Source: Chara braunii (lineage: Eukaryota; Plantae; Charophyceae). Taken from it: 64,000 bases of DNA. Below the pieces are notes generated by a model. It was not told the origin of the DNA and ran no database searches. It saw nothing but the letters and a program-made list of their open reading frames with translations. The position numbers and the translations under genes are program-made. Positions 19,201-54,187 of this stretch are shown in pieces (position 1 is the first letter of the stretch; each line of letters begins with the position of its first letter). Location: the NCBI GenBank assembly GCA_003427395.1, contig BFEA01000015.1, positions 2,016,025-2,080,024 of the forward strand, read 5' to 3'.

Positions 19201-22200
19201 GAACCTTCCCCATCGTGGAAGATTACAAGTCTCTGCGTGATAGCACCCTGCGCACGATCCCCACCTTGTATGTTGAATACCTCTCTTCCCTCCCCCAACC
19301 CAATCATTAATTCCCCCAAGCTCACCGGATCGTCCATTTCGTCGATCTCGGTGGCAAAGCTTCTTGTTGCTTTCCCCCGCCTCCCCCAGAATGGCCCCAA
19401 CCCCCTCCCCCTCCCCTCCTCGTTAACTACAACCGAGCGGAGCATCAATAAGCCAGCGAGAAGGATCCTGATGATGCCATCTGGAAGACAACAAGGCACT
19501 CCTGGACAGTGGACGATTACCGGCGAGACACGGCGACAGACTTCGCGAGGATATTGCAATTGAAGTTCGTGCCAATACGTGCTTCTCTTTGCTCGCTGAT
19601 ATGGTAGCATGCGTTCCTCTGCTTGTTGATACGTTGGGTTCCTCTCTCTCTCATTCCCTTTGTTTCTCATGTAAATTAGCTAGACCTGCATGCACGCAAT
19701 CAGGAGATCACATAATTTTGGAACCTCTTGAACATCACATATGTGACGTACCAGCTTCTGTACCCGAACGATGGCCTGAGTTTTTGTTGTTCCTACTCTT
19801 CAGATTTCCCTTTTTTTTTCTTGGTACCCCTTCCTTTTTGCTATCCCTTCAATGCACAAAATCACAAGCCAACCAGACCCTCTCACGTCTAAGACAATGC
19901 TTCTTTTGGATTTCTTTGGAATTTGCTTTCGACAATCCATGCATCTACGTAGGAATTATGCGCGCCTTAGCGAGCGCGCTAGGAATTTTGTTCGGCAGTT
20001 GGAAACTCCAGAAACTATGAACGCTCGTCCCATTAACATGTCCTTTCTTCCAAATTAAAATTTCCCACACTCTACCTTGAAAGATCTGTGAATTTTCTGT
20101 AGGAACCTAGATAGACGTAGGATTTTCACGCGCTTAATTTCGTGCATTAATGTTGCTTTGATTTTTCAATCTTGAAATAAGTTTTCCCTGCTTCCCCCTA
20201 CGACCCATGCCGTCTTCACCCTTCTCCTCTTCGTGCCTCCCCTCCTTCACCCGTAACTATTTTTCATCCCCTCTCCCTTTTTGCTTCGCCCCCACTCCTT
20301 TTCGTCTGAATCTTGGTTCTGCTCCGCGCTACTCTTCTCGCTCTCCTCCTTTCCGCCTTCATCCCCGTACAAGAACTCCCTACAGATCCCCCCCCAGGGT
20401 ATTCGAAGTCGAGGCGACGTCGTGTAAGGAGGATACTCCCCGCACGCTGTAATCTGATTGGCTGCGAAGGAACTCACGGGGATCGATAAGGCTTTCTCCG
20501 GGCGATTAACCAAAACTCTCTCCTCACCCCCTCCTATCTCCACCCCACTTTCCCCCATCTTCTATTCTTATCTTCGCAATTATAAAACCCGCAAGCGCGT
20601 CCCCAAAACGCTCTCTCAACCCATCTGCCAGCTTCAGGGAAGTCGTGGCTAGGTGTTGTGTAAGTAGCAAGTCGGAAAGTCCTGACGAGACGACGAAAGT
20701 GTATGTAAGGTTGTGTGTTGGGTGGTCACAACAAACTGCCGGATTTGGGCAAGTTAGTGCAAAAGCTGAGTTGGCGGGGTGACGATCGCTGTGGTTTGGA
20801 GGTTGGTACGTGGCGGCCAAAATCGTCAGTATTGAAGTGAGAAGAGGGTGTGTGTACGAGTGGGTTCATGGCCAGGGGTCATTATCAAAGAGCAGAAGGC
20901 TGGTGCACCTTGATTTTCAGATTCTTCTTCCTTTGGTTCTCATAAGCGACGTCCATGGCGAATAGCCAAGTGCTCCCCTTCAAGATTGTCTGTATGACCA
21001 GAGTTCTCTCCCTCTCTTATCAGTGCTATTTTCCGGTCAAGCTACGCTTCCGTCTCCCCCCCCCCCCCCCCCCTCTCTCTCTCGTTCCCTTGCTCTTATC
21101 TATCTGATGAATACCAAAATAACCCAAGATTTCCTTAATCTCGCTCGCCCCTGTTGAATTCCATCGGATCTCATACGGACGAGCATTGTTGAATTCAAAG
21201 GGACTAGTAAGCCACATGAGATCTTATTGGTTTTCTTTTGTTGACGTATCTCTCAAACAGTTGAGGATTCATGTATGTGAGATTTGTTTACACATATGCA
21301 TCGATTGGGCTAACTACGCACAAATTCCGCTGAGATTATGGGAATGGATGCTTGTCGCTCCCTTAATGAATGATGATTGTTGTTGTGATTGGATCAAACT
21401 CGCACTTTTCTTTTTGATCGGTTCACCGGATGGGTGAAAGGCAATAAAGCATGTACTACTAGCATTGCGACTGTTTACTTTTGTGATTGAACAACTGATT
21501 GGGTAGACTCACGTACTCAGAGTTTGTTTGTGCTATATGGACCGATTGTCCTACTAATAACCCGACAGGGTGCCGACTCCCGAGATCCCCATCGCGACCA
21601 TTTTTGTAAAATGAGGAAATGATACATTTATGCGAGTATGACATACGGGAAACCGTCGCCAAGATCGGTGAACGTTACTATTTTCCACCCGAAACGAGGT
21701 GTTCGAGATTCGTTGGCGTTGGTTTTGTCATTATCGATACCATTTTCCCCCGTACTCTTTATTATTGCCTTTTAACGAACTGATTGTCAGCCCGTGAACG
21801 GCAGTAGCGCCCCATTGGCCCAACACTATGTGCAGTGATTGTTGCCGCACCGAATGTTATCGGGAGAAGGGGTTATACTACTTGACACGTGGCGAGGACG
21901 AACACAGGGAAAGAGCGACCATCCACGTCGGATTCCAGACTCTATAGCGAACGGCATTGGGACTTGATTCAAAAACGAGATCCCACTCGCCCTTCCATTC
22001 AAAAAGACGACGAGTAACTCGTGCCATTTCTTTCCCACGCGCTTATGGTCCTTCCTCACTTAAACTGAAATCGCACAGGGGCTTTCAGTTCTCTATGTGG
22101 CCTCATACTAAGTATTCCCAAATCATTGGTACACCCCATTTTTCAGTCCTTCAGGGCCTATTCCGCACAAATTATCACTCCGAACGAAGGACGGGACAGG

Positions 22201-22221
22201 GCGTGAGGTTTGAACGTCACA
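16275..22221 (+). mobile_element. Gypsy-like element A, 5'-truncated: integrase pseudogene (16275-17480), three accessory ORF remnants (17593-19750), att junction (19728-19748), 3' LTR (19742-22221)
   Basis: HHCC (AHEEQAAHF...CLVC), FSKYIEVYP, EEILTDN and a GPY/F-like region, colinear with element B. LTR runs TGTGACG...GAGGTTTGAACGTCACA. Confidence 0.85.
21500..21950 (+). pseudogene. LTR-encoded CxxC protein homolog (LTR A)
   Basis: From 21625, one frame reads HLCEYDIRETV...GFVIIDTIFPRTLLLLPFNELIVSP*TAVAPHWPNTMCSDCCRTECYR; the stop replaces the conserved Trp. Confidence 0.75.
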
Positions 22222-23004
22222 AGTCCGCAATGAAATTCGGAAGTCCCATTTGGATAATTGAAAGTGAATATCTGTAATTTTAAATGGAGAAATATGTTTT
22301 CTGCCACTATAGATCGAACCTTCATGGTTTCCTCCTCCAAACCGGAGAAGATTGTGTATGCGAGTGGGATATCCAGCGGTATTTGGATCAAAGCACTCAA
22401 CCCACTCAATATCCTGACAACCGAAAGCTGCATGTGTTTACTATTCTGGGTTTGTCGCCATTGAAATTGAGTTTCCCCTTCACTATCTCCTCCTCCCGTA
22501 TCATAATATAATTGTTATCCCCTGGTGAGCGATTGCCCCTTTTTGGGCGCATCTTCATGCTCTGAATGTATATATTACTATGCCTATCGTGTGCAAGGAT
22601 TTGCCCAGTGGCACCAAACTCATAGGGAATTCGAGCATCGAGGAGCCTTCAATTGAGGCTCTCATCGACGGACTCGGAGCTCTGTGAGTCCCGTAGGCGC
22701 CACGTGTTGGAGCAACGAGATACCCAATGTGTCCCCCTCGTACACCGTCTGCGGGACCGACCCAGGCGGAGGTGTAAGTCGGGCCCTTCGCCCAGCCCTA
22801 AGAACCCCACTGCGTCATGAACCCTCCCCTCCCCGACAAACTACATTTTTGTCCTTGGAACCCCGACATATAGGATTCCAGTTTCGATCTGGGACTCCAT
22901 CCCCACTTTCCTAAAATCCTTGGCACACCCCCTTTTTGTAACACTTTCGGGCCTATACCCGCTCCGATCAGGAAGTTGTGTTGGGTGTGAGGTTCGACAT
23001 CACA
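22222..23004 (+). mobile_element. 3' half of another LTR (E) with a degraded LTR-ORF; probably the target of element A
   Basis: WIIESEYL, CVCEWDI, LLLPYHNIIVIPW, CSEC motifs. Last ~120 bp match the end of LTR B. Ends GAGGTTCGACATCACA. Confidence 0.8.
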
Positions 23005-23054: not shown

Positions 23055-25694
23055 TGTGACATAACCTTTTTTTTTCAGGGACAGTAATTCTCTTCCCATA
23101 TTTTTCTCACTCTCTGCACCGAAGTTGCTTAATGGTCCTAGTACTCCGGGGTGTTTGTTGCGGTGGAGGGATTCCCGGCGTCCTCTGCTTTTTCAAATAA
23201 ATGGTTTGCTTTGATTAAGGAAAGGGGAAACGTTAATACCCCTCCCCGCAACTTGAACGAAACCTTTGTATTCATTTCCCCCCAACTGGGCAAAAAGTGT
23301 TGCAAGGCCCATAATGACTCTTGGCGTCATTTTTGCACCCTGTAAAACACTTTCCCATAATTTTTGCACAGTGGGCGACGGGCGTTACCAGCCCAGCCAG
23401 GGTGCGAAAATGACATGAAAAGTCGTTTCGGGGTCTGCAACACTCTTTGCCCCGTTGGAGGGGAAATAAATACAAAGGTTTCATCGTGGGGAGGTTTTAT
23501 AACTTTTTCCAAGAAAGAGACTTTGCACATGCGAAGTAAATTTACAGAGAAAGTAGTTGCCATGTTCTATCAGGCCTCGCTCCAGTACTCACCACATGCA
23601 CAAAAGACACGAAATATGGCATTGTATATTTCCATGTTCTAGCAGAAGATTCTTTCTCGCACATTTGGTGAATAGTGGAGTGTGTGATGCGCAACCTCAC
23701 ACCATGCACGATGTCCCGTACCGGTGAATGTCGATCAGAGCAATTGGGGGTGTGGCCGAGGATTTTTGGTCGGTGGGGTTGAATCGCCCGGATGCAACGG
23801 AGGATTCTTGTTTTGTACCGAGGCCTTTCTTGGGTTCGAACCTTCGCTGAGGGCAAAAGAGAGATACAAGGAAATGAGAGGGGTTATTCTGAAAAGACAC
23901 GCTCTGTTTCGATTCAAAAGTGTCCGCTCACCTGAGAGGACTGACAACGGCACGCTACTCGGTCGACCATTGACAAAACCAAAAGGAGGGGAAAAAGGAC
24001 AAGGAAGAGTCGAATTCACCGCTCTTTTCGCGATAAGCTAACTCGAAGGCGGAAGCCCTGAGGCATGGAGCTTTTAGGCCTCTGAGTCAGATTCATCGAA
24101 TCCCCACGGACAACCAGGTGTGGCACCGTTTGATTTGGGCTGGGCTGGGGGAACCCAAGTCTGAAAGTTAGCTGGGCGTGCGCCCGCGCTGCGGGAGAGA
24201 TCTGGGAATCGGGCCGCACCTTCATATCCCATCACTAGTCTTCGCCAGGAACACGAATCTCCTTGCCGACACCAACGACACTTAAACTGAGGCTGCCACG
24301 TGGCATGGGCCGCAGACCAGGGTAGACGCGCCAGGTCGGTGTAAGGCAGGATCAGGGGAGGGGAGGAGAACCGATCAATCAGAACAAACCCACTTCCCCC
24401 TACATGGCGGGCCATGGTGGGGTTATATAGATTAATCTGCTCAGTTTGTCGCAGGGTGTTCCGTATGTCCGCATCGCAGGACAAGTTTTTGTCGTTTGCG
24501 ATCGGGAAGCACGGTAGCATGCTGGAACGGACCGACGAGGGGGACGAGCGCGGGCAGTTCCCCGTGCCAACGTTCACCGAGGCGAACACGGACTCCGTAT
24601 AAAACTCAGTGGAAATTACCTCACCCTCTCTGTCCTAGTCAGAGTGCACGCTCAGGAATACAGAGTCGTGATCACCAATTAGTTGTCGGGACAGAGGTGA
24701 CTAGGACAGAGGCGCGGAGATATCAGTCGCGTCGTGGGGCCACGTGCGACTGGTGTCCCCGGTTGTTGGATGTAAGTCGTGGAGAAACACCATCCCAATT
24801 AACCCGGGTTACCTGCTCATCCAAAGGGAGAGGAGGGAAGAGTTAGTGACGATCCCTGCGCATACACGTGGCACCGGGATCGGCAAGGGTCGGGGAAGAG
24901 AGGGGGTTCCAACACACTCATGCATTCATGCAGATGGTCGACACCCAGTGTTCCCCAGAGTTGCGCTTGTAAGCGCCCACACACCTTTACATTCATCTAT
25001 CTTGGACAGCGAGACATTTAACATCCATAGACTCTCATACCAATCAGCTTGCATACAATTATGTACCCCGCCCTCAGGACACTGCACACACCACACTTGG
25101 ACAAAGCAGCAATGGAGATACACCATCCCACACTTGGACGCCGCGGACTTCACGCATAGCTCGCGCAGCATTGCAGCCAAGATCAAAGAGAGGGGGAGGA
25201 AGGGAATGCGAGAATTTATAGCGCGGAAGGCGGCGGAGTGCGAGCGTGAGGTGCGGGTAGCAAGGGGTGTAGATGAGCAGGACAGAAGAAGGGCAGGGAT
25301 TCAAGGAGGATTGAAAGAGGCGAGTAGATAGTTCTGTGTAATTGGGGTGGTCGTTCAAGTGATGCGCGCGCTCTGCCTCCACCGCATTGATCTGACCATC
25401 CCAACTAGACAACCAGTCGCTCGCGTTGATAGGTAAGGAGGGGATCAGGCATAATCGTTGGGGGAAGACGAGGAGACACGCACAAAGGAGTGCACAGCAA
25501 GAAGGGAAGATGGCATGTAGATGTAGAGCAGGAAGCGGGTTTGTGCGACGCGCAAGAAATTTTAAAAACGGCCGCGCACTCCTTATTACGAAGAAAATTA
25601 AAAATTCCAACCCCCGTAATTCCTAACTGTTTCTTGGATTTCTCGGTGCGGTCGCTAACCGTCCGCACGGAGAAATTAACCGGGACAGGTCACA
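23055..25694 (-). mobile_element. Solo LTR D (2.64 kb) of a diverged subfamily
   Basis: TGTGAC/GTCACA termini, flanks ggcc/ggtc (4-bp TSD with 1 mismatch), minus-strand end AGGTTATGTCACA. ORF 24074-24589 carries LSCDADI..GFVLID..LILPYTDLARLPW..W..CRWC..SDSEA. Confidence 0.8.
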
Positions 25695-26721
25695 GGTCAG
25701 CCCGTAGCATCAGGACTGAGCTTCTTCGATGGGTCAGTCACTGCGCCTCCCCTCGAGTCCCCTCCCCCTATGGACATCAGCAGTCTCTGCTCAATGCCAC
25801 TCGGGGGGCTTTGGCGAGGGAAATCACGCCCCTTCAAAAAAAAAAGGAAAAGAAGAAAAGAAAAGGAAACAACAACTCGTTCTGCGTGTCAGTCTGTGAA
25901 AGCAAAAAAATACCAAAAGAAAAACAAAACTAAGCAACTGAGATCTGTCCGTTGGATCATGCTCGTTGGACCCAGGTCCAAACATCTGACGGGATCCCTT
26001 TTTTTTTTTTTTTTGACGGGATCCATTTTGATGTACTTTTTTCTCGTTTTTTTCTGATGTTTTTGATCTACTGTTCTGACATAACCGTTCCAGAAATGCA
26101 CAGAACGAGTCTGTACGCCGTTCGGCTACAGACCATCCTGCCAAGCGAAAAGACGTCCAGGTACATTCTGACAGGAGCGTCTGTGAGAATCTGATTGTCA
26201 GAAACCTCAGCAGCATGACTACTGAGTACTGTGGCTGGACAGTTCCACGTGTTCACTTTTTTTGTTTTCCTTCGGAAATAAATATAAGCCCCGACCTGGG
26301 CCCAGCCCTCCTTACAAGACAGAAAAAAAAAAAAGAAAAAAAAGCCCTCCTTACAAGGAAGAAGAAGGCCCGACAGTACGAGCACGTGTTCGCTATTAGC
26401 CGCCTCCCTCCACTACTCAACATTCTGCATGCATTGGGACAGGACTCCAATATTTTGAATGCACTGGGACAGCTCCGATGTCCGGATACATATGAAGTCT
26501 CGTGTAGTAGACCGAGACCCCATCACTTACGAGCAGGTAACGATAGTTCTCGCCCCCCAACCCCCCCCGGCAACAGAGTTTTGTGACGTTACTTGTGAGG
26601 CTGCATGTAGGTTATGTGGAGCGTATCAATCTCANAAAAAAAAAAAAAAAAAAAAAAAGCGTATCAATCCTATCGGGCCAGAGGCACGTTTTTAGGGCCC
26701 CCTCTGTTGAACGTCCTTCGG

Positions 26722-31250: not shown

Positions 31251-31327
<77 letters not shown>

Positions 31328-34300: not shown

Positions 34301-35126
34301 GGGAGAATGAAAATAGTAAGGGACTACCGACTGATATTCCACAACTGGACTGACATTGATATAACTATACCACTAAAATCCCTGGAGAACTTTCCCGATC
34401 TCTTCCCCCCCCCATCAAATTGTCTAGTTGGAATGCAGTGGTATGGGATGGATGGATAATCCGTAGAATATGTGTCAGTTGCGCTGCAACGGAGGGGAGA
34501 AAAGAGGTTAGGTAGACAGTTTAGTCAGACGCCCAACAGCAGGGTGAAGAGGCCTCTGGGTCAAAAGTTCTCCTCAAGCTCATTCCTGATCAGCCAATCC
34601 CCTGGTTTTAGGGTAGTCAATGCTGGCAGGCGTCACTTGGAAAAGATCATGTTCAGGGACGCTGGACCCGATTTCCGGCAGGTGCAGCTCCCCACCAATA
34701 GATGGAGCCGCCCGGGAATGGTAGGGGTGTCTGCTCTTATCAGCACCTCTAGCAAATCCTAGGGTGCTTTAAAAAAAAAAAAAAAAAAAAAAGATTGAGG
34801 CCAACCGCATCAGATTTGAAGGCTTGCGAAATTCGACGTCGACAAGTGACGAATCGGCGAGACACCCATAGCGTCTTGATAGTGCATCAGATATAACCCC
34901 GACCCGGGCGACGAAACCAATGGAGGCGGTAGCTCTGTTCCCCAAAGCAAAGACCGTGCCTACCCTCCTGCATTCGTATCCCAGAGCTTGCCACAGGGGA
35001 TCTTAGTTCCGATCTGGGACTCCACCCCCACTTTCCTAAAATCATTGGCACACCCCCTTTTCGCACTTCCAGGCCCACTCACACTCCAATCAGGAAGTCG
35101 CGTCGGGCGTGAGGTTGGGCGTCACA
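30505..35126 (+). mobile_element. LTR C (5'-truncated), split by a LINE
   Basis: Homologous to LTR B (TATA region, (GA)n, terminal ~130 bp). LTR-ORF spans 31864-32319 plus 34810-34932. Ends GAGGTTGGGCGTCACA. Confidence 0.85.
32320..34792 (+). mobile_element. 5'-truncated L1/Tx1-type LINE with TSD
   Basis: SLFGRSLII, RGGLGIID, CKLC..ETIEHIFLQC motifs; poly-A 34771-34792; 17-bp TSD gatt(a/g)aggccaaccgca at 32303-32319 and 34793-34809. Confidence 0.93.
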
Positions 35127-40830: not shown

Positions 40831-41566
40831 GAATTTTCGCGGTGACCACAAGCACAACAATTATGATGACTACTACAACAACAATACCAACAACACAGAT
40901 TGCAATATTAACAACAATAACAACAACAACAAGTGAGGAATCGCTTGTTTGGGGGGAGACCATGGTTAGTGGTGCAGGGGAAGGTGAGTGTGAGGATGCT
41001 GATTGCCCACCCTCGCAAAAAAAAGTTGACACGCCACGTTTTGGTGAGGATGTCTAGGTTAATAAAAAATCCCCATCGCACCCTTCATGGTCACTGGAGG
41101 GTACAAGGACAAGATGAAGCTTCTGATGATTGTAATCAGAAAGACGGTAAAGAATCTGAAAATTGGGGGGACACAACAGAGGGATAGGGAAGAGAACGAA
41201 GGAAGAAACGAAGAGGGCTTCTCAAAATTTGTTGTTGCGCCGCGGTTCTCACTCGCGCACATCTTGCGGCGCTATGAACTGGGCTTTGACTGGACCGCGC
41301 CCGTAATCTTGTGTAACTATCGCTTTATGTGGGCCCAATTGTAACATTATCTTTCTTCTTTCTTGATTTCCTCGTGTTTGCCCGCCTTCTTCTTCTTTGT
41401 CGTGCATGCTTAATACTCTGTTCTAATTGGCCTAAACGTCTGTACAACTGGATCGATGTTTGGAGTGCAGCTACGACCCCCACGCCGCAGCCTGGCTATG
41501 TAGACGTAGGCACTTCCTCTCTTCTCCTCCTCACCAGTTGGGCTTAATCCTATATGTTTAGCGCAA

Positions 41567-41672
41567 GCATGCATGCTATAAATTTTGCAAGCGCGATTAG
41601 TTTGCTCTCTATGGACCTTGGAGTAAGCGCGATCAGTGAGGGCTGACTGATGAGTCACCTTGACAGGTAGGT
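41567..41672 (+). promoter_or_regulatory. Putative LTR core promoter (GCATGCATGC-TATAAA) and downstream splice donor; also at 30852-30958 and 52417-52522
   Basis: Motif is identical in three LTR copies, with AG|GT(GA/AG)GT about 90 nt downstream in each. Confidence 0.55.
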
Positions 41673-41841
41673 CGATGAGAGAGTTAGGCGATCCGACGAG
41701 TTGGTGTCGGGTATGCGGGGTTGACAAGCGGGCCGCGACGAAATGTGGCACACGGGCGAACTTGGCTTGCATGCTCGAACCAAGCGGGTTGACAACTCTG
41801 TGTTGATGCGCGGCGACGGACTGCCCGCATCAGGAGAGTGT

Positions 41842-41997
<156 letters not shown>

Positions 41998-43443
41998 AAC
42001 TATGTGTGGGATGAGGTCTCTTCTTCCAGTTATCTGTATAATTTTGATTTCTACTTTAGTCGATCTTGTTGCGGCCCTCTCAGACTTTCCTTGTAAATCG
42101 TTTCGGGTTTTTCTTTGACGTTTTTGCCTCATATGCATGCATGAATGGATGAGAACCTTTTTCCAGTGATCTTTTCAGATTTTTTATCTTGTTCTGTGAT
42201 GCCTGCTTAATTCAAATCTCGTCACTTTCTAGTATCCAACTGTGTCGAGCAATAATCCGGGTCTGATTGAAAACACTCGCTATAGATGGTTTGGGTTTAA
42301 TTGTTAGCCTTTGATCGTCATCAGATCACTGAGAATGTTGTGATGTGTTGATCCTCGATGCCAGGACAATTGCCCCCCCCTCCCCTTCTCTTTCTTTTTG
42401 TCACATGAATGGCATGAATGTGAATGTAATGGCTGGATTGCATTCGAAATAGCGTGGGTAGAATAGTTGCATGCAGGCAGGACACAATCGATACACCGAC
42501 GCGAGAAACCCGAGTCTGATCCACTTTTGTACGTGTGCACGCTCGCGTACGACCACGATCTCAACAAAACCGAGTCGAAGTGTACGCGCGCGTCTGCATG
42601 AGTCGACCTCGATCCTGGCTCATTATCATGATAAGGGATGTGGGAGACCAAGTTCACTAGTCAGATATGGTTGTAGAAATTCCCTTTTGGATCACCGATC
42701 GTGAGAGTATAAGGAACCGAGAGTATCGCGAATATTGGAAGGGTGAGCACCTCAGACAACGGGGAAACTTGAGAAACTCGGAATTCCCCTGTCTGACGTA
42801 GAACGACCGACTGTGCGCGGGGGATTTTCACTGGGCCGTAACTAGCGATCCTAGGGGCCCAGACTATCTGAATACTAACAACGCTCAGTATTACATATCT
42901 CCAGGCTTCATTGTTATTAATACCAGTTTCCCTCTCTTCCATCTCCTCCTTTCATATCACCAACTCACAGTGGTACCGTGGAATCCCGTAGCTCTCTATT
43001 TGCCCCGCACACAGTGTGAAGAGTGCCAGCGGTACCAGGTATATCGAGGTTCGGGATTTGTCCGACGAACTTGAACCGAAGTCGAGCAGCGGTTACACAG
43101 CTTCCGCTTAAGGCCAGCCTCGTCGCATTTCGAAGCTTGTTACGAGCGGCGCCGACAACTGTTCGAACAGCGCAACAGCCATCGTGTCCCACCGGTCCAC
43201 CAGATAAGGGACCGACCACGGCGACGCAACTGGCAAATGCAATAATCCCATCCCCGAAGGATGAAACGCCAAATACGATCTTCGAGTACCATTTTGCACC
43301 ATTATCCATAAACTTGCCACCAAAGATCTCAGTTCCGACCTGGGACTCCACCCCCACTTTCCTAAAATCCTTGGCACACCCCCTTTTCGCACTTTGGGGC
43401 CCCCCATCCCACTCCGATCAGGAAGTCGCGTTGGGCGTGAGGT

Positions 43444-43456
43444 TGGTATCGGAGCC
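43444..43456 (+). promoter_or_regulatory. Primer binding site complementary to initiator tRNA-Met
   Basis: TGGTATCGGAGCC (canonical TGGTATCAGAGC) exactly where LTR homology ends. Confidence 0.9.
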
Positions 43457-43499
43457 GACACGTGGCAGGTTTACGGATTAACACGGAAGGTGATTATAC

Positions 43500-44650
43500 C
43501 GAACGATCTGGCGAACAGAGGACGACTGAGGCAGCGGGACGCGCCGCGCCACGATCCTTTAGTAACATGAAGTAGGTCGGCTGGGCGGCAGGCAGTCCAT
43601 ATGAATGCGAATTAGAACCATAATCCGAATCCTGGTCCAGTCCCGGCCCCACGAGCTCGTGCGCCCATAGCCCCACCGGACCTCTATCTTTTCGACCCTG
43701 CACATCATTTGGTCGGGGCATGGCTAGCCACGCTATGCATGCAACAGTACGATAACGATGAAGCTCAATTAACATCCCCGCTAGATTGGGAGGGGACGTG
43801 CATCATTGGTTCAACACTTACGTTTGGGTAGATCTCCCAACTTTTGAACGAAATTTCTTGAACCGATTTGACTACATTCATCCGGAACAAGCCTTGTTCA
43901 TGATTAAAGATCGGGTACAAAAGCCACTCGAATCTGTCACAGAATATCGAAACCGGTTTTATAGGATGTTTGTCAAAACCGAACGAGGAGAGGAAGGCGA
44001 CATGAATCTATTCATCGACGGGCTCCGCAGCAGGACCATGAGGGCGAAATTGCGAAAGCAATTTTCCCCGATCAATCATACCCTGCAACATATTATGTCT
44101 GCAGCAGAAGAAATGGAGCGGCCGCCAATTTCCTAGAGGGGGACGATTATCTTAGAGAGGGAGACTCCTCGGAACTGGCTAGAGCAAGGGCCGAGCTGGC
44201 CGCGCTTCAAAATAAGTTAAAAAACATGGGTTTTGTCTCTGGTCCCGTCACCTATTTAGAGCACATCGTAACCAAAAAAACCGGAGCAGACGCAACCGCA
44301 GGGTTGCCCATGCCAGCGATGGCCGCTCCCGTACATGTCGTGCCCATTCTTGCAACCCTTCAGATATGACGAGTAGAGTCAGTGAGCCAAACACGATATT
44401 AGAGTTGACCCAGACTTTAGTCAGCCTAATACGAGAATGCAAGGAGCAACGGGAGTACAACGCCCGGATGGAATCGTTGATGCGATCTATGCGCCCCATT
44501 GCTATTAGAGCCGCCCCAGTGACACAAGGCATTGCCCCCGCCCAACCAGTAGGAGGAATGACAGCCAATCTGAGTGTCTGTTACACATGTCATCAGTCGG
44601 GCCACATCGCTCAGGACTGTCTACATCGATCTGCGCAAGATTGAGTCGGG
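43500..44650 (+). pseudogene. gag: gag (capsid-like domain and CCHC knuckle)
   Basis: WF..FERNFLNRF..QKPLESVTEYRNRF..FIDGL; CYTCHQSGHIAQDC at ~44578. Confidence 0.85.
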
Positions 44651-45199
44651 GCTGCCCCTGTGGCCGCTACGCCAGTGGCCAACGGTCAAGGGAGGGTAGG
44701 AACGATGCTTGAAGAGATAGAAGGAAGGGGAAGCACGATAGCTACTATCGAGGAAGCAGCGAAACTTATCCCGCTCGATCAATATATCGCCTTAAGGATA
44801 TCCGGGGTTGGGAATGATCGGAACCATCCGACCGACGGACGAGCGAAAAGAAGTAGCCGAATGGAGACCTTCCTCAAGTGAAATGGAGTCAGGCGGTCCT
44901 ACCTTCGTTACGGGAGAAATTGACATTTTGAACATTGTTCGGGCCTTAGACCATCGGATTCCATTGTCGATTGGCCATTTGCCATCAATATCAGAACAAG
45001 CTAATGAACGCATGTTGCAACATTGCAAGGCGAACAGAAAATGATTCGCTCTTAGTAAACTGACAATGACGAAAGGGAAAGCCCCAACTCCCGATGACAA
45101 ACCCGAAAACCCCAGCACGATCGACCCAATATGGTTGGGACTGATCCAGAAAGATGATCATTTCCTATGTATCAAAGCCATTCCGTAGAAATCCGCAGA

Positions 45200-47790
45200 A
45201 TGTGACATTGAAGTATGGGGAGTTCCGTAAAATGCTGTCATCGATTCAGGAGCAGCTGTTCAGGCTGTATCACTGAAGGTAGTGGAAAAAGCAGGACGAC
45301 AGAAAAATATGATCACGTTAGCCGAAAAAGACCATTTCGTCTCTGCGGACGTTGCTTTTCGGTTAGGAAAGGTTCATGCCTTAGGGGATGTGGTGGTATT
45401 GGATGTCAATACCTATGATGTACTTCTGGGATTACCGACGTTCGTCGCGCTACGAGCCAGTCTGGACTTCGAACGACGATCGATAATCCTACGAAATACA
45501 GGCGTGAAACCTTATGTTATTCCAATGCGTCTAACTCTACGAACCATGATGCTTGCGACTCGGAAAGTTCCTCCGACACCTGGAGTCGCTCTCCAAGTAA
45601 TCACCTGGCAACTTGGAAAGTCGAGCAGGAGGATGAGAAACACGATTCCTCAAGCGAGTCCGACAACGAAAATGAAGTTGATTTCGATAAGACTCAACAA
45701 CTGATTCGCTACCTAATCCGACAGAAGACTCCTAAAACATTTGTCCTTACGGAAAGAAACCTACAACGAACTCGGGCTTTAATTTTTGGAGAACCCCTCG
45801 TACATGTATCCCGGATGATTGACTCTTTGGAACTCCCCCGAACCTTGTATGAAACCACGACCCCACTTCTTTCAAGATACCGAGAGAAGAAGGCGTTATG
45901 CGACATTACGGGATTGCCCGTTCCTTACTGTCGTCCGAGAAAGAGGTGCGATTATTACACTTAGGGGTCGAAAGAAAGCTTTGGAACCCCCTGAGCGCGA
46001 CGACCCTACGCTCTATGAGCTCGGCATCAAGATCGTCGAAAAGTCGGTTCCCTGGCAAGACATCAACGACGGTGTGACCCCGGAAGAACACGTGGCCATC
46101 CGAGAAGAGGACGCCCAGATGGTCGCCACTGTGTTCTCCTGGCGGTTGGATAATTCAAGTTCCTTCCTTTCTGCTCCCCCTGCCGAGAACAACCGCAGAG
46201 TGAACATGAAACACATGATGGTTACCATACACGGAAGGCCGTACGAACTGCATGTACCTCAATATGTACCTAACAAAACTCATTGACTGATTGCATATAT
46301 TTTGACTGAATATCAAGATGTTATTAGCGTAATGGATACAAATATTGGATTGTCTTTAGTTATTCAACACGGGATTCAGATCGAAACGCATCTCCGATCC
46401 ACTGTAAGCCATACCGATATTCTCTTGCAGAGAGAAAAGTTGCATTACAAAGGATCAGGGAGTTTGAGGCTAACGGATGGCTCGAACCGGCAACAAGACC
46501 TTCGTCATTTCCCGTGGTCTTAGTCCCGAAAAAAGTGGGTCGATTCGCATTTGCATTTGTTACGGGAAATTGAATGACATCACGATCAAGGATGTGCATC
46601 CCCTTCCCTGGATTGATGATTTGTTGGATGCGATTGGGTGTGTGAATTATTTCAGTAAGTTTGATATTCGCCATGGATTTTATTACATCTTGGTCAAAGA
46701 AGAAGATCGGTCGAAGACGGTCTTTGTGCTGTTTGAGGGCACCTAGCGGTGGATTCATTGTCCGATGAGAATCTGCAATGCACCGGCCACGTTCCAAAGG
46801 GCGATGAACGTAACCTTTCAGATTTTCGTTAACAAGACCCGACTGATGCAGGGGATGATTAATTTCTGCGTTATTGTGTACATGGATGATATTCTGGTCT
46901 ATTCGGAATCATTTCACGTGCATGCGCAACATATTGAATGGACGTTGGGAGCGCTGCGGGACACTGGGTTCAAAATTGCACTGGAAAAGAGTGAGTTTTT
47001 CCTCTTGGAAATCTCGTTCTTGGGTTACGTAGTAACGCGAGGCAGTTTAAGGCCATATTCAAAAAAGGTCGCGGTTGTTCGAGAAACCCTCACGCCCACG
47101 TCACTGACACAGGTTCGGGCCTTTTTGGGACTGGCGTCGTACTACCACAAATTTATCAAGGGTTTCGTGGCAGTCGCACGACCTCTAAAGAATCTTCTGC
47201 ACAAGGACCAGCCCCTGCGGTGGGATATTGAGTGCGAGCGAACCTGTATTGCTTTAAAGGAGGCCCTGGTTACTGCGCCTATTTTGATCCGGTCGGACCC
47301 ACAAAAACAGTTCATACTCATTACGGACTGGCAGCTTGAAGCGATCTCCGCTATCCTAGCCAAGAAGGGGAAAGACGGCTGCGAACACGTCATTGAGTAT
47401 GCTTCTCGGACAGTGCCTGACGAAAGGAGAAACGATTCAGCTCCTCAGGGAGAGTGTTACGCAGTGGTTTGGGGAATTCAACATTTCCATCTGTATCTCT
47501 ACGGACAGAAGTTCCTTCTTGTCACGGATCATGAGCCCTTGCTGGTCCTCAAGAGGCTCACCAATTACACGGGTACGATTGGACGTTGGGCTGTATGACT
47601 GCAAGAGTACGACTTCGATATCGTCCATCGGAAGACGGAGCAGCACGGGAACGCTGACGGCTTGACACATCTGCATCGACCTGACAAGGTGACTAAAGGG
47701 GAGGAGATTACCTCGTGGAAGGAACCAGAACCCGCCAACGAGCGTTCATATGGACAGGTGGCCATCCTTCCTCGAAATCCCAAGGGGTGA
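45200..47790 (+). pseudogene. pol: pol: aspartic protease, reverse transcriptase, RNase H (stops and frameshifts)
   Basis: AVIDSGA, DVLLG, PLPWIDDLLD, NAPATFQRAMN, VYMDDILVY, ITDW..EYASR..ECYAVVWG..TDHEPL..NADGL. Confidence 0.95.
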
Positions 47791-47922
47791 TTGACACGAT
47801 GGAGATGGGGCGCGAAGGTCATTCCGAAGGTCCCCTTTCTCCTCTCTCATCCTCCTCCTTTCCCTCCCTCCCTGATAAATTTTGCTATTTTTCCGAGGCA
47901 ATTTCGAGAGTACTCGGTCCCT

Positions 47923-49400
47923 ATGCGACCAAGCGGGGAAGGTTATGCCGAGTGGGTAGATTGTAGGCGGTGTGTTTCCCGAGCCCATGGTTCCTGTATC
48001 AAGTACCGGAATGCGGACAAACCCCGGTTGTGTCCTATGTGTCGCACCGATGAAATCCCGACGGAGGCTCGATTTCTCGAAGCCACGTCCGAAGGACTAG
48101 AAAAGACCCGACGGCTTAGAAGGGCTGAAGTGTGGACAAATGTCGTCTTGGTAGCTAAGGTAGTTGGGAACCCCCTCCGAGATTTCACAAGGGAGAATTG
48201 GAGACGGGCCAATGAGAGAGCTCAGGATTACCGATGGAATGAGGAATGGTTAGAAAAACGGAAAACGGACGGGAGCGGGATTTGGATGTATGTCCCGCAT
48301 CCGTTTGTGAAGTATGACTGGGTTAAGTCAGCCCACGAGGAGACTGCGGCCCATTTCGCTGTCCGAATCACAGAGGCGGCAATTGATAAAAATAAGTGGT
48401 ATTGGACCAGGTCCAACATTCGCGACGATGTTAAGTTCATCGTCTGAAATTGTCAGGTCTGCGCCGCCGACAAAGCGCCAATTCAGCCGCCTAGGTCGAT
48501 AGTGCCTACCGTAGTCAAACGACCATTCCAGAGGGTTAGTATGGATACCACCGATATTGTCATACCCCCTGGACCGAATAGCTGTGAGTATTCCATTCTG
48601 TTGGTATTCGTGGAATACTTTTCGAAATGGATCGAGGCGTATCCATGTAAGACGCGACAGGCGGCTGAAATTGCGAGATACATCAACCGTTTTCTCGAAA
48701 TGCACCAAGACACAGAGGAGATCCTTACGGACAATGGGGCACAATTTAGATGGGAAGTCTTGAGGAATCTAGTCTTACACGGTGTCTCTATCCGCAATAC
48801 TGCTCCCCACATGTCGCAATCTAACGGACTGGTGGAGAACGCCAATCGAGTGATTAAGACCGCTTTGCGACGCAATATCGCGGCAAATGACACGAGGCTG
48901 TGGTCTGATATCGTGGACCATATCCTGGCCATCCACCGGGGGACACCCCACAAATCCACGGGTCTGACCCCCTTCCAACTACGGACCAGTAGTCTGCCCT
49001 GTGTAGCCCTACCGAGCCTAAATGATGAAACGGCCCTTCCGTGACGGACCACTAGGGCGACAGATAAGGATAAAGCCCAACGCCACATAGAACTGATGGA
49101 AAAGGTCCTCCCCCGATTGGCCCGAAAAAGACAATGAATGACAGAAATGGCCCATGGGAGACAGGTCAGGAGTTACGAGGCCCGGAATGGGAACGCTGGG
49201 CATCGGCCCCAATATAAATTAGGGGACATCGTGCAGGTGAGGAAATGTGCTCGCCTGGGCAAGCTAGCGCTATGATTCTTCGGGCGATTTCGCGTGGTCG
49301 AGCTCAGTCCCAACGGGGTGAACACGATGCGGCTTGCGCCGGAGGTGTCGAGAAGTCGATCGGCTCGTCCGATCATTCGACACGCGTCCTGCCTTCGTCC
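47923..49400 (+). pseudogene. int: Integrase with N-terminal PHD-like Cys/His module
   Basis: WVDCRRC..HGSC..CPMC; HHCC zinc finger; D (VSMD), D (TDNG), E (GLVE); STGLTPFQL; GPY/F-like region. Confidence 0.92.
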
Positions 49401-49520
49401 TTTCCCCTCTTCCCCTTCTCCTCCATCATTTGCATTGTCCCTCGGTCAAGAATAGGACGACGACTCTCTAGAATCCTTTTTTCTCTCTCGACCACCGTCT
49501 TCGACTCCGCCTTCATCGCC

Positions 49521-51690
49521 ATGAGTTTTTCGACGGAGCAGGTGATCAACGAGCGTCTGATGATCCCGAGGGGGCGTTTAGCGACAATTCGGCAGGTGAA
49601 GCGACCTTGGTCGAGTTCCGATCTCCTTCAATTCGCAGCCTTCTTCAACACAGCAGCCATCCACGCAGCAGCAGAGTTCCGTTTCGTACACGCAGGGTCG
49701 ATGCGTGTACTGGCCGAGATTTCGACTTTCCAGCGCTTGTCCTCGCCCGGCGTAAGCCACATATCCGTCATCGTCACTTTCATGGGTGATATCACGGTGC
49801 TACACCCGACAATTCATGCAGACATCTATCGGCAGTTGCGGGGTTGAACCGAGGAGATCACGGCCGCGTGGGTCGAGTTGCTGGCTCGACCGAGGGAAAT
49901 AATCGTGACCTTGAACGATATAGACCTCCGACTCCGCATCTCCAGCAGCGCGCCAGAGATCTTTTTCCCGGAGCTCCTCCCCTTTGAGTGGCCCCAATGA
50001 ACCGTCATCGTCGCTCCCTCTTCAACCTTCCGTCTGATCTCCCCACCTTCTGGCAATCTGCTATCGATCCCGCCCTCTCCTTCAGGATCCAGGAGCTCAG
50101 CGTGCCGATCTTGGACTAAGATAAGTGGAACGGGTGGTGGGACGCTTACATAAAACTCAGCTTTTGTTTGGTGTGTGTGGTATTTCACTGGGCGGAGCTA
50201 GCCCCAAAAGGTGAAGGGGATGAGGTCCAGGACAACGAGGTGGAACTATTGATCGTGCAGGCTTGGCGGACGAGTACAAAGGGAGAATTGTTGGGTATAT
50301 TATTCGGCGAGGTGGAAGAAGGCCATCTCGACGCAGTCAAGGACGAGTTGTTGGTGCTCTTGGCGCAGCTGGTGGACGACTTGCCCTTCAACATCCTGTC
50401 GAGGTGTGACGGGAAGCCTGGGACAGACGTGCTCATCGGCACTCTTGCGCGGCATTTTTTGTGGCCCACATATACGGAGCTGGACGGGGATAACTGCTTT
50501 TACCCGTCCCCGAGCCTCTATCTCGAAATTGACGTCACCGATGTCACACTGTGGGACCCTTTTGTCCGGCGAGGAAACGCGCTAGGAGCCAGTGACGAAG
50601 AAGAAGAAGACGAAGAAGAAGAAGAAGAGGAGTCAGAGGAAGAAAAATCAGGCACTAGTCGGGACTGACCCCGACTATATTGGGTCCGAGGAAGAGGAAG
50701 AGGAAAGTGGATCGGGAGAACAGAGTGGCCGTCCCCCTCCAAGCAAAGAGGAGGAAGACTCGGAGGCCGAAGCTTAATGGAGGCGGGAGAAAACGGAGGC
50801 CAAACGACCAGTCGAAGAATCTGAAAGGCCGCCACCACAGTTGTTGCTAGGCGATCCATCGCTAAATCCGGAGCTGCCGCGCGAAGAGTTTGAAGGAAAT
50901 GGAACCGCAGCAGAGGGGTCAGGAAGTCGACGCCGCCAAAGGAGTGAATCCCCGACTCCGTCTTCTCCGCCATCCCGAGCCACTCTTCGCCTTCGTGGAA
51001 ATACGGACGATCGGGCTTCGTCCCCGATCGTTATCCCGCCGTCCCCTTGACTTCCTCACCCCTCACCAACTCCTGGGTCGACCCCCGTTCCCAGATGGAT
51101 GGTGCCCTTTCCCACCCTCTCTCTTCCACCAGTTTTACGTCACCCGCCTTCTCGTCACGGTCGTCCCGCATGCTACCACCCGCTCCTTCGCCGCCTCCTT
51201 CCCTCTCCATGTCCTTCTCTTCAGCGCGACCTGGCAGGAATTTAGTAATATAGAAGTTTATTGCATCATCTCGGGCACGATCCCCGCCTGTGAAAATTAC
51301 AAGAACTTCCACGCTGCTATCCCTCGCACCCTCTCCACCCTCTACCCCAACTATCTCGCCTCTCTCCCTCATCAACGAGAGCACCCCCGATTCCCCCACA
51401 TCCACCGCACCATCCACTACACCCGGATCCCCACCGACGATAGGGAGATTCGCCGCTTCATACCTCCCCTCCCCCAAGCCCATCCACCACCTCCTCCGCC
51501 CGTTATCAGATTGCCCTTCCCCGGAAATGTTTAGGATAGAGCCCGTGAATGCCAAACTGAGTGACATCCACACTCTTATCTTACGGTAAGTAGCACGTGC
51601 GAGTTCCACGTCGATCCTCGGGTTATACGGGAGCTTGCTCAAGATTGGAACCCCCTAGGCGTCACATATGTGACGAACCATTTTCTGTAA
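49521..51690 (+). pseudogene. Three accessory ORFs of unknown function downstream of integrase
   Basis: Protein-level conservation with element A (see findings). Confidence 0.75.
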
Positions 51691-52692
51691 TCGCGCGACT
51701 TTCTGCGCGAAGCTGCTTTGGGGAAATGGGACGGGCTAGATGGGTGAGTTGTGGAAAGATGGGTCAGTAAGGCAAGTTGCATGGATAACCTCGTTTCTTT
51801 TTGTTTTCTGTGGAATCTGTTGGGTTGGTGTCGAGAAAGTCCCACGCCGACGATTGGGTAACCGCGCCTTAACAAGCGTGATGGACAACGGTTGTCATGA
51901 CTTCCTTCTTGTTCTGCTGTGAGCACTAGGAATTTTTGGTGCGATCATCGCGCGGGAGTATCATTTTTTGAATTTTCAACTGATGTCGAGCCCCTACACG
52001 CTCACGGAATTGTTTTTGGGCTTCTCGGAATTTCTTTTTGCAATTAGGACTTGGACTAGGAATTTAGGTACTCTGAATTTTGCTGCGCCACGCTTCTCAC
52101 TCGCGCACATCTTGCGGCGCTAGGAACTGGGCTCTGATTGGACCGCGCCCTTAATCTTATGTAACTGTTGCTTTTGGCGGGCGCGATAGTAACTGTATCT
52201 TTCTTCTTTCTTGATTTCCTCGTGTTTGCCCGCCTTCTTCTTCTTTGTCTTGCATGCTTAATACTCTGTTCTAATTGGCATGAACACCTATACAAAACCG
52301 GATCGATGCGTGGAGTGCGGCTACAACCCCCACGTCGTGGCCTGGCCATGCAGACGTAGGCACTTCCTCTCTTCTCCTCCTGACCACTTGGGCTTAATCC
52401 CATATCTTTCGCGCAAGCATGCATGCTATAAAATTTGCAAGCGCGATTAGTTTGCTCTCTATGGACCTTGGAGTTAGCGCGATCAGTGAGGGTCGGCTAA
52501 CGAGTCAGCTTGAGAGGTGAGTCGACGAGAGAGTTGGGCGATCCAACGAGCTGGTGTCGGGTATGCGGGGTTGACGTGCGGGCTGCGACAGACTGTGGCG
52601 CACGGGCGAACCTGGCTTACATGCTCGAACCAAGCGGGGTGACAACTCTATGTTGATGCGCGACGACGGACTGCCCGCATCGGGAAAGTGTG

Positions 52693-52755
<63 letters not shown>

Positions 52756-54187
52756 AGCTATGTGTGGGATGAGATCCCTTCTTCCAATTATCTGTATAAT
52801 TTTGATTTCTACTTTGGTCGATCTTGTTGCGACTCTCTCGGACTTTCCTTGTAAATCGTTTCGGGTTTTTCTTTGACGTTTTTGCCTCGTATGCATGCAT
52901 GAATGAATGCGAACCCTTTTCGAGTGATCTTTTCGGATTCTTAATCTTGTTCTGTGATGCCTGCTTAATTCAAATCTCGTCACTTTCTAGTATCCATCTG
53001 CGTCGAGCAATAATCCGGAGTCTGATTGAAAACACTCGCTATGGATGGTTTGGGTTTAATTGTTAGCCTTTTATCGTCATCAGATCACTGAGAATGCTAT
53101 GATGTGTTGGCCCTCGATGCCAGGACGATTGCCCCCCCCTCCCCTTCTCTTTCCCTTCGTCACATGAATGGCATGGATGTGAATGTAATGGCTGGATCTC
53201 ACCCGAAATAGCATGGGTAGGATAGTTGCATGCAGGTAGGACACAATCGATATACCGACGTGAGAAACCTGAGTCTGATCCACTTTCGTTCATGTGCACT
53301 TGAGAAAACCGAGTCGCAGCGTACGTGCGTGTCTGCATGAGTCAACCTCGATCCTAACTCACTATAAGGGATGTGGGAGACCGAGTTCAGTAGTCGGATA
53401 TGGCTGTAGAAATTCCCTTTTGGATCATCGATCGTGAGAGCCTGAGGGACCCAGAGTATCGCGAATACTGGGAGGGTGAGCACCTCAGACAACGGGGAAA
53501 CTTGAGAAACCCGGAATTCCTGTGTCTGATGGAGAACGACCGACTGTGCGCGGGGGATTTTCACTGGGCCGTAACTAGCGATCCTAGGGGCCCAGACTAT
53601 CCGAATACTAACAACACTCAATATTACATATCTCCGGGCTTCATTGTTATTAATACCAGTTTCCATCTCTTCCATCTCCTCCTTCCATATCACCAGCTCA
53701 TAGTGGTACCGTGGAACTCCTTAGCTCGCTATTGGCCCCGCACACCGTGTGAAGAGTGTCAGCGGTACCAGGTGTATCGAGCTTCGGGATTTATCCGACG
53801 AACCTGGACCGAAGTCGAGCAGCGATTACACAGCTTCCGCTTAAGGCCAGCCTCGTCGGATTCCGAAGCTTGTTACGAGCGGCGCCGACAACTGTTCGAA
53901 CAGCGCAACAGCCATGGTGTCCGACCGGTCCACCAGATAAGGGACCGACCACGGCGACGCAACTGGCAGAGGCGATAATCCCATCCCCGAAGGATGAAAC
54001 ACCAGATACGATCTTCGCGTACCATCTTGCACCATTGTCCCTAAATTTGCCGCCAGAGATCTCAGCTCTGACCTGGGACTCCACCCCCACTTTCCTAAAA
54101 TCCTTGGCACACCCCCTTTTCGCACTTCCGGGCCCCCCATCCCACTCCGATCAGGAAGTCGCGCTGGGCGTGAGGTTGGGCGTCACA
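51669..54187 (+). repeat. 3' LTR of element B (2519 bp)
   Basis: TGTGACG...CGTCACA inverted termini. Confidence 0.9.
53400..53978 (+). CDS. Intact LTR-encoded 192-aa CxxC protein of unknown function
   Basis: ATG-initiated open frame; homologs in all other LTRs of the window. The 5' LTR copy (from 42667) has a premature TAG. Confidence 0.75.
   Translation: MAVEIPFWIIDRESLRDPEYREYWEGEHLRQRGNLRNPEFLCLMENDRLCAGDFHWAVTSDPRGPDYPNTNNTQYYISPGFIVINTSFHLFHLLLPYHQLIVVPWNSLARYWPRTPCEECQRYQVYRASGFIRRTWTEVEQRLHSFRLRPASSDSEACYERRRQLFEQRNSHGVRPVHQIRDRPRRRNWQRR

Follow-up and report, generated by a model that had tools for sequence, protein, structure and literature searches.

In retrotransposons with long terminal repeats (LTRs), both ends of the linear complementary DNA (cDNA) are fixed by reverse transcription, with the right end set by the base at the boundary between U5 and the primer-binding site (PBS) and the left end set by the 3' end of the plus-strand primer. 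Here we analyse a group of Ty3/gypsy elements of the charophyte Chara braunii, starting from element B, which lies at 41232-54187 of a stretch of 64,000 nucleotides of contig BFEA01000015.1 (positions 2,016,025 to 2,080,024 of the forward strand, assembly GCA_003427395.1; this whole stretch is called the window). The lineage, whose relatives all come from Chara braunii, stores its right integration end before the 3' LTR and not beside the PBS. With canonical Ty3/gypsy elements (Metaviridae) the Chara elements share the order gag, protease, reverse transcriptase (RT), RNase H and integrase, LTRs of kilobase size, a PBS starting with TGG after the 5' LTR, TG...CA ends, short terminal inverted repeats and a target-site duplication (TSD) of 4 bp. 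They differ from them in that the 5' LTR is without the last 11 nt of the element, and in that this piece (B hereafter, the LTR proper being A), together with a 2-nt spacer, occupies the position of the polypurine tract (PPT). The Chara LTRs are not co-extensive with the element ends, and the predicted linear cDNA would be without the right CA end.

Several other systems resemble the Chara elements in part. In IS3 and IS30, terminal inverted repeats that are abutted a few bp apart (2 bp in IS30) are the reactive substrate of a DDE enzyme. The short spacer, the abutted ends and the DDE enzyme are found in the Chara elements as well, but IS3 and IS30 are bacterial DNA transposons whose junction is made by the transposase on a DNA copy, whereas the Chara elements, being retroelements, carry the junction sequence internally and would restore the junction once reverse transcription is over. 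Hepadnaviruses, which use 11-nt direct repeats, and caulimoviruses are also reverse-transcribing and end as open circles via template switches, with neither LTRs nor integrase-dependent insertion; the tRNA-Met PBS of caulimoviruses is of nearly the same sequence as the Chara PBS. Elements of the PAT, Ngaro and DIRS type are not known to make a TSD, and in PAT, Ngaro and TOC the segments corresponding to B are long. The PAT, Ngaro and TOC-type elements carry split direct repeats in the order A1-body-B1-A2-B2 (PMC4157794). As in those elements, the internal B-A junction of the Chara elements keeps the sequence of the joined termini. Unlike the Chara elements, which have a DDE integrase, TSDs and a B of 11 nt with a 2-nt spacer, they encode a tyrosine recombinase. 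The analogy to split direct repeats drawn in the preliminary description of this locus is thus formally correct for the layout, but it does not extend to the enzyme or to the absence of TSDs.

The integrase of the foamy virus PFV cleaves a palindromic LTR-LTR junction in vitro to give both 3'-processed ends, with 2 nt between CA and TG (PMC1180852), and the 2-LTR circles of human immunodeficiency virus (HIV) were proposed as a reserve integration substrate (PMC4372172). The Chara junction is likewise palindromic with CA...TG, and its spacing of 2 nt is that of PFV. By contrast, the retroviral linear cDNA has both attachment (att) ends and the circle route is optional or disputed, while the predicted linear cDNA of the Chara elements would be without the right att end, so that joining would be required by the sequence. 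No prior description of this layout for integrase-bearing LTR elements was found in the open literature, with Repbase, GyDB and the subscription journals lying outside the search.

Results

Layout and condition of element B

Element B has the following features.

41232-43443 (+): 5' LTR, truncated on its left side, ending in ...GGGCGTGAGGT without terminal CGTCACA (89-91% identity to the 3' LTR in self-BLAST)
43444-43456 (+): PBS, TGGTATCGGAGCC, directly abutting GAGGT of the 5' LTR
43457-51644 (+): degenerate internal region with remnants of gag, protease, RT, RNase H and DDE integrase, then about 2 kb without domain match
45827-45837 (+): second central copy of TTGGAACCCCC, with one mismatch; candidate central plus-strand priming site
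45981-45991 (+): central copy of TTGGAACCCCC, followed by TGAGCG; candidate central plus-strand priming site
51645-51655 (+): TTGGAACCCCC motif before B1, ending exactly at the start of B1; candidate plus-strand primer 3' end, in the place of the PPT
51656-51666 (+): B1, TAGGCGTCACA, internal copy of the right element end, matching B2 at 10 of 11 positions
51667-51668 (+): TA spacer between the abutted ends (CACA-TA-TGTG), read in the sequence
51669-54176 (+): 3' LTR proper (A2), from TGTGACG to GTGAGGT, with GAGGT at 54172-54176
54177-54187 (+): B2, TGGGCGTCACA, terminal and missing from the 5' LTR; right end used by the integrase

The bases and coordinates given in the preliminary description (GAGGT ending at 43443, B1, the palindrome at 51660-51675 and the terminal piece at 54177-54187) all agree with this reading. 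The palindrome, with its TGTGACG arm at 51669-51675, is perfect, and purine runs in the 30 nt upstream of the 3' LTR junction do not exceed 5. A 10/11 match between B1 and B2 at one fixed position would arise by chance with a probability of 8e-6. Since palindromes with 7-nt arms are not rare as a generic pattern in 64 kb, and since loose pattern scans of the window gave results at chance level that have no weight by themselves, the weight rests on the position of the junction and on its recurrence.

Element B is old and dead: the self-comparison gives 88-95% identity between its two LTRs, the homology of the 5' LTR to the 3' LTR begins only at 41232, the left part being gone, its open reading frames (ORFs) are broken with the coding region in pieces, and its own TSD is unreadable because of the truncation of the 5' LTR. 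As a lone old copy of this kind is explicable by a microhomology deletion between two TGGs (TGG...TGG), further copies were sought. Note also that the two LTRs of element B are unequal in a (GA)n microsatellite, one run being about three times as long as the other (41848-41997 versus 52699-52755), and that a related LTR of the window has another (GA)n run, next to the N gap at 31251.

Junctions in related elements

Relatives were collected by a protein search with the RT-RNase H piece at 46765-47598 of the window, which returned many proteins at about 80% identity (up to 82%) and others down to 48%; all 12 relatives that were looked up belong to assembly GCA_003427395.1. In two metagenome scans, one gave no match and the other a single internal fragment of 2.4 kb. 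The junctions were then compared in the window and in ten loci with DNA on different contigs of the same assembly (L001-L010).

The three kinds of junction are the same throughout this set. At the 5' LTR, GTGAGGT stands straight against the PBS, with no B, in 10/10 cases, and the 13-mer TGGTATCGGAGCC follows GAGGT with 0-2 changes in each of them; CGTCACA before the PBS was found in none of the ten, and the claim that the 5' LTR abuts the PBS with no terminal CA is thus borne out. At the internal junction, all 11 elements have (G/A)GAAC or GCAAC with a C-rich tract, then a B1 of exactly 11 nt ending in CACA, a 2-nt spacer (TA in ten, TT in L002) and TGTGACG. At the 3' end, GTGAGGT is followed in 13/13 cases by a B2 of 11-15 nt ending in CACA. 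A junction palindrome behind GAGGT (GAGGT-B-TA-TGTG) was seen in 0/11 elements.

The set covers subfamilies at 48-66% RT identity (L005, L006, L009) and includes a young copy, L001, with 98% identity between its LTR parts and an open gag-pol frame of 1298 codons. As the layout is the same in young and in divergent copies, the permuted layout is a stable property of the lineage and not the decay of a single copy.

It is noted that at L008:15411-15438 the junction unit TCACATATGTGACG is doubled in tandem before the 3' LTR (B1-TA-TGTGACG-TCACA-TA-TGTGACG...), with the 5' LTR of this element beginning normally after the TSD AACC; this could be slippage on the palindrome or the trace of an aberrant junction event. 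U5 ends of the GTGTGAGGT type occur, in addition, at L002 4736-4760 and near 25861 on the minus strand of L001, where they run into different strings starting with TGG (TGGTGCCAGAG... and TGGCATGATTTTGG...), which may represent sister families with other primers.

Element ends and the correspondence of B1 and B2

Three copies allow the ends of the element to be read directly. In L001, L002 and L008 the 4-bp TSDs AGCC, CCCT and AACC lie directly outside TGTGACG on the left and CGTCACA on the right, and L006, the 5' end of which is damaged, is consistent with a TSD TCAG. As the TSDs lie outside B2, B2 belongs to the element. The ends form terminal inverted repeats of 7 nt (TGTGACG/CGTCACA), and such ends with a TSD of 4 bp are the marks of a DDE integrase. 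The spacer is lost on insertion, with the integrated 5' ends starting at TGTGACG right after the TSD and the 3' ends stopping at CACA.

B falls into types by subfamily (TGGGCG.., TAGGCG.., TGCGCG.., TGAAC..), and the variants TGGGCG, TGCGCG and TGAAC are shared by B1 and B2. The mismatches between B1 and B2 average 1.0 within an element and 1.7 between elements (permutation p = 0.012, in a test that is weak because related copies have a common B), which agrees with the claim that the internal and terminal B segments co-vary. More telling for a copying from B1 is the B2 of L006, T-CCC-TGCGCGTCACA, in which three C's come from the tract upstream of B1. Judged by these correspondences, B2 appears to be copied from B1.

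B1 is of constant length; B2 varies, with lengths of 11 nt (9 cases), 12 nt (2), 13 nt (1) and 15 nt (1) (n = 13; Fisher p = 0.067 for the difference between B1 and B2). The extra bases sit at the seam GAGGT|B, and the first of them is always T, which is the first base of the PBS. This fits an imprecise joining of cDNA ends, in which the U5 end would keep about 1 base of the PBS and the 5' end of the plus strand would be variable. Taken together, the LTR as set by reverse transcription appears to be permuted by about 13 nt relative to the ends used by the integrase.

Of the observations that the preliminary description named as capable of overturning it, namely CGTCACA at the end of the 5' LTRs, a normal PPT and a lack of covariation between the B segments, each was looked for and none refutes it.

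A candidate plus-strand primer motif

A PPT abutting the 3' LTR was found in 0/11 elements. The preliminary description held that the palindromic junction stands in place of a PPT; a normal PPT is indeed missing, but the exact position at which a plus-strand primer would end is taken by a conserved GGAACCCCC motif. B1 and TA make up the 13 nt before TGTGACG, GGAACCCCC lies upstream of those, and (T)TGGAACCCCC ends exactly at B1 in every element, with small variants in two. The proposed start of the cDNA about 13 nt upstream of TGTGACG fits this arrangement, with B2 equal to B1 and beginning at the boundary of the C-tract.

In every subfamily, pol contains one or two further copies of the motif GGAACCCCC(T), as a 9-11-mer, at a fixed distance of 2.4-2.6 kb from the PBS. 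Their positions are as follows.

L001: 10295, 10451
L003: 12290, 12446
L005: 9035
L006: 17152
L009: 9187
L010: 11764, 11920
Window: 45827-45837, 45981-45991

The second pol copy often runs on into TG(A/G)GCG, as B1 does. The pol motif is in frame and encodes Leu-Glu-Pro-Pro, and protein constraint contributes to its conservation; it matches the 3' motif exactly in nucleotides while adjacent codons vary. In lentiviruses and Ty1, the plus strand is primed at a central as well as at a 3' site, and the pair of GGAACCCCC motifs (in pol and at the 3' end) resembles these two sites. Based on position and recurrence, GGAACCCCC is likely a plus-strand primer site, although not purine-rich. A tRNA-like second PBS in TGGAACCCCC and a hairpin-primed plus strand at the palindrome were also considered, and neither found support.

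Proteins, PBS and class assignment

The ORF pieces of the window copy give Pfam matches in the order gag, protease, RT, RNase H and DDE integrase (rve), and the intact relatives L001, L003 and L010 have gag zf-CCHC, protease, RT, RNase H and integrase with H2C2 and rve. No tyrosine recombinase was found in 26 ORFs on both strands of four elements. Between the integrase core and B1 there is an ORF-rich stretch of about 2 kb with no Pfam match (window 49245-51534; L001 13129-15550; L010 15437-17422), and a weak zf-4CXXC_R1-like match lies before the H2C2 domain.

The elements are Ty3/gypsy retrotransposons, judging from their proteins, LTRs, PBS, TG...CA ends and TSD. Among the structural features of this class, direct LTRs, TG...CA element ends and a short TSD are present (4 bp in the three copies given above), and a PPT at the 3' LTR and a U5 ending in CA at the PBS are missing. 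The PBS TGGTATCGGAGCC resembles that for initiator tRNA-Met in plants, to which it is putatively assigned; a search of the window and the loci turned up no tRNA gene.

It is also noted that public Chara gene models fuse pol fragments of these elements to HSP20, protein kinase, peptidase M16/S8, Myb and Gpr1/Fun34 domains, over ranges of up to 170 kb (L004, L005, L007, L008 and two more loci). These models are probably chimeric gene calls.

Other related copies in the window

Besides element B, the window contains parts of other related elements.

19718-22221 (+): 3' part of a second element (C), with motif TTGGAACCTCT at 19718-19728 and B1 TGAACATCACA at 19729-19739, then TA
19742-22209 (+): LTR of element C, ending in GAGGT, followed by its B2 TTGAACGTCACA at 22210-22221 (12 nt)
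22879-23004 (+): terminal fragment of another related LTR, ending in GAGGT and TCGACATCACA
23683-23700 (-): related LTR end, GTGAGGT and TGCGCATCACA
34987-35126 (+): end of a further related LTR, GAGGT and TGGGCGTCACA, with B2 at 35116-35126

The B segment of element C (TGAAC[A/G]TCACA) is unlike that of element B, yet B1 and B2 agree within element C. Copies of the final ~130 bp of the LTR were found by self-comparison at 22879-23004, 34987-35126 and 43313-43443, with one more near 23700 on the minus strand; wherever a recurring LTR end has no PBS after it, GAGGT is followed by 11-12 nt ending in (C/T)CACA.

This U5 end of about 130 bp (22879-23004, 34987-35126, 43313-43443, 54058-54176) is 83-90% identical among LTRs that are otherwise unalignable, and judged by these identities it appears much more constrained than the remaining LTR. 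At 22222-23004, the terminal LTR fragment abuts the end of element C, and the reverse-oriented LTR end (23683-23700, minus strand) lies about 680 bp beyond; these are stacked or nested insertions of related elements.

Discussion

We propose a model in which an offset of about 11-13 nt separates the sites setting the cDNA ends from the ends used by the integrase, the cDNA ends become joined, and the junction is then cut; we give this explanation a probability of roughly 0.55. In the model, a tRNA at the PBS would prime the minus strand, giving a right cDNA end ...GAGGT, possibly with 1-3 nt more of the PBS, and the plus strand would begin right after GGAACCCCC, giving a left cDNA end B-TA-TGTGACG. 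The linear cDNA would then be [B-TA-A]-PBS-body-[B-TA-A], with the left att end 13 bp inside the left terminus and with no right att or CA end. Since this predicted molecule would be without the right att end, a link between the U5 end and the B end would be needed; host end joining could supply it, giving a 2-LTR circle, or the RT could switch templates, giving an open circle. The joining would yield GAGGT-B-TA-TGTGACG, that is, a junction of abutted ends. The DDE integrase would cut both strands of CACA-TA-TGTG after CA, producing two 3'-processed ends with 2-nt 5' overhangs, and the processed ends would be inserted with a 4-bp target duplication. Compared with the linear cDNA, the integrated form, TSD-TGTGACG..A..GTGAGGT-PBS-body-GGAACCCCC-B1-TA-TGTGACG..A..GTGAGGT-B2-TSD, would be permuted by 13 nt, having lost B-TA at the left and gained B at the right, and B2 would be rebuilt in each cycle from B1 instead of being inherited.

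In this scheme, joining first and cutting afterwards, by way of a circle, is the simplest and leading route, though unproven, and the cleavage by PFV integrase of its own 2-nt-spaced junction (PMC1180852) is a precedent for the cut. The stronger statement, that the lineage cannot integrate linear cDNA and depends on an LTR-LTR junction (in a closed or open circle) that is opened by the DDE integrase, is tentative, its chance being in our judgement a little below even. The preliminary description went further and held that the element must integrate via a circle; this is not shown, for a route in which cutting comes before joining gives the same product.

Several points weigh against the model. 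The evidence consists of integrated copies alone, with no free junction, circle or cDNA end observed, and the junction sequence is visible solely as the internal copy B1-TA-A2. A 2-LTR circle would hold two identical palindromes, and opening of the internal one would give A-B-TA-A-PBS-body-B; the permuted forms predicted in the preliminary description were not seen, this type being present in 0/11 elements, which has p = 0.0005 under unbiased opening of the circle, while the count is still compatible with tandem-LTR permuted forms at up to ~24%. The 0/11 count implies one of three things, namely that the integrase discriminates the new junction, that the permuted products are lost, or that the order of events is different. 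In the first case, the integrase might recognise the new junction via the conserved ~130-bp U5 block or via a nick at the seam. B1 and B2 are, moreover, not identical in every element, old copies showing 1-2 mismatches; element B and L007 both have TAGGCG in B1 against TGGGCG in B2, which could result from later mutation at a CHG site or from a seam of PBS-derived TG(G) and a shortened B. The GGAACCCCC motif is not purine-rich, and in that respect a primer role for it is a guess. Finally, the sample is small (about 12 elements), and all relatives come from one assembly with many gaps.

One alternative dispenses with the circle: the integrase would cut the palindrome lying 13 bp inside the left terminus of the linear cDNA, the freed 11-bp B duplex would serve as the "U5 end", the B duplex and the TGTG end would be inserted, and host repair would join the free ...GAGGT to the free B end. 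The integrated sequence, the TSD and the imprecise GAGGT|B seam would all be identical to those of the circle route, and sequence alone cannot separate the two; this order of events would also explain why only the palindrome near the DNA end is used and why the tandem-LTR form is missing. Against it, a duplex of 11 bp is a very short integrase substrate judging by in vitro work, each insertion would leave a chromosome break in need of repair, and we know of no precedent, so that we consider it unlikely, though the most serious of the rivals. Ranked next, and unlikely as well, is the addition of B to the right end by the RT itself, followed by integration of a linear molecule, where the plus strand would, for example, switch from the 5' end to the 3' end of the minus strand or re-prime on B1 via a common TGG. 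Many copies do have TGG at the start of both the PBS and B, the extra bases at the seam resemble template-switch additions, and hepadnaviruses circularise by a comparable template switch. The subfamilies with TGCGCG, TGAAC and TCGAC, however, have no TGG homology and yet the same layout, and B would remain single-stranded unless the molecule were effectively an open circle, which is the case of the model proposed here.

The remaining alternatives have little to recommend them. That an ordinary LTR element lost the 5' CGTCACA in the window copy, by TGG...TGG microhomology deletion or through an assembly error, would suit a copy that is old, truncated and broken and that has TGG in both the PBS and B; it would leave B1 before the 3' LTR unexplained, and a one-copy accident is ruled out by the 10/10 identical GAGGT|PBS junctions on different contigs and in different subfamilies, including those with no TGG and the copy with 98%-identical LTRs, so that this reading is very improbable. 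An equally slight chance is given to the idea that B2 is a preferred target sequence, with site-specific insertion beside ...CGTCACA. Here it is true that B2 follows the last base common to both LTRs, and an automatic LTR caller would call it flank; but the 4-bp repeats of L001, L002 and L008 lie outside B2, B2 co-varies with the B1 of its own element, and TGTGACG and CGTCACA are inverted repeats of one another, and the position of the TSDs rules the idea out. The least credible of all is a tyrosine-recombinase element of the DIRS/PAT/Ngaro type that integrates its circle by site-specific recombination, for which the A1-body-B1-A2-B2 layout speaks formally (PMC4157794); the domain scans, with no recombinase domain in the ORFs of four elements and with H2C2 and rve present, together with the TSDs rule it out, 4-bp TSDs and TG...CA ends being the marks of a DDE integrase and B having only 11 nt. 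Recombination via the TGGGCGT repeat (the U5 end and the start of B) was rejected too, as its product would be without GAGGT-TGGGCGT, which exists.

Concluding remarks

The standard model, with identical LTRs whose outer ends are the integrase substrates, is ruled out by the sequence for this whole lineage, and with it ruled out, an extra end-joining step must exist. One practical consequence is that LTR finders that rely on LTR-LTR similarity would end the element 11 nt short on its right side and overlook the TSD, so that this abundant Chara family would be mis-called. The candidate plus-strand priming signal is itself unusual in not being purine-rich. The elements offer a natural system for asking whether LTR-LTR junctions are true integration intermediates. 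If the model is true, the lineage would be a living example of the circle-junction route formerly proposed for retroviruses, and possibly an intermediate stage linking LTR elements to the circle-integrating elements with split repeats. Split direct repeats could arise by a mere shift of the priming sites.

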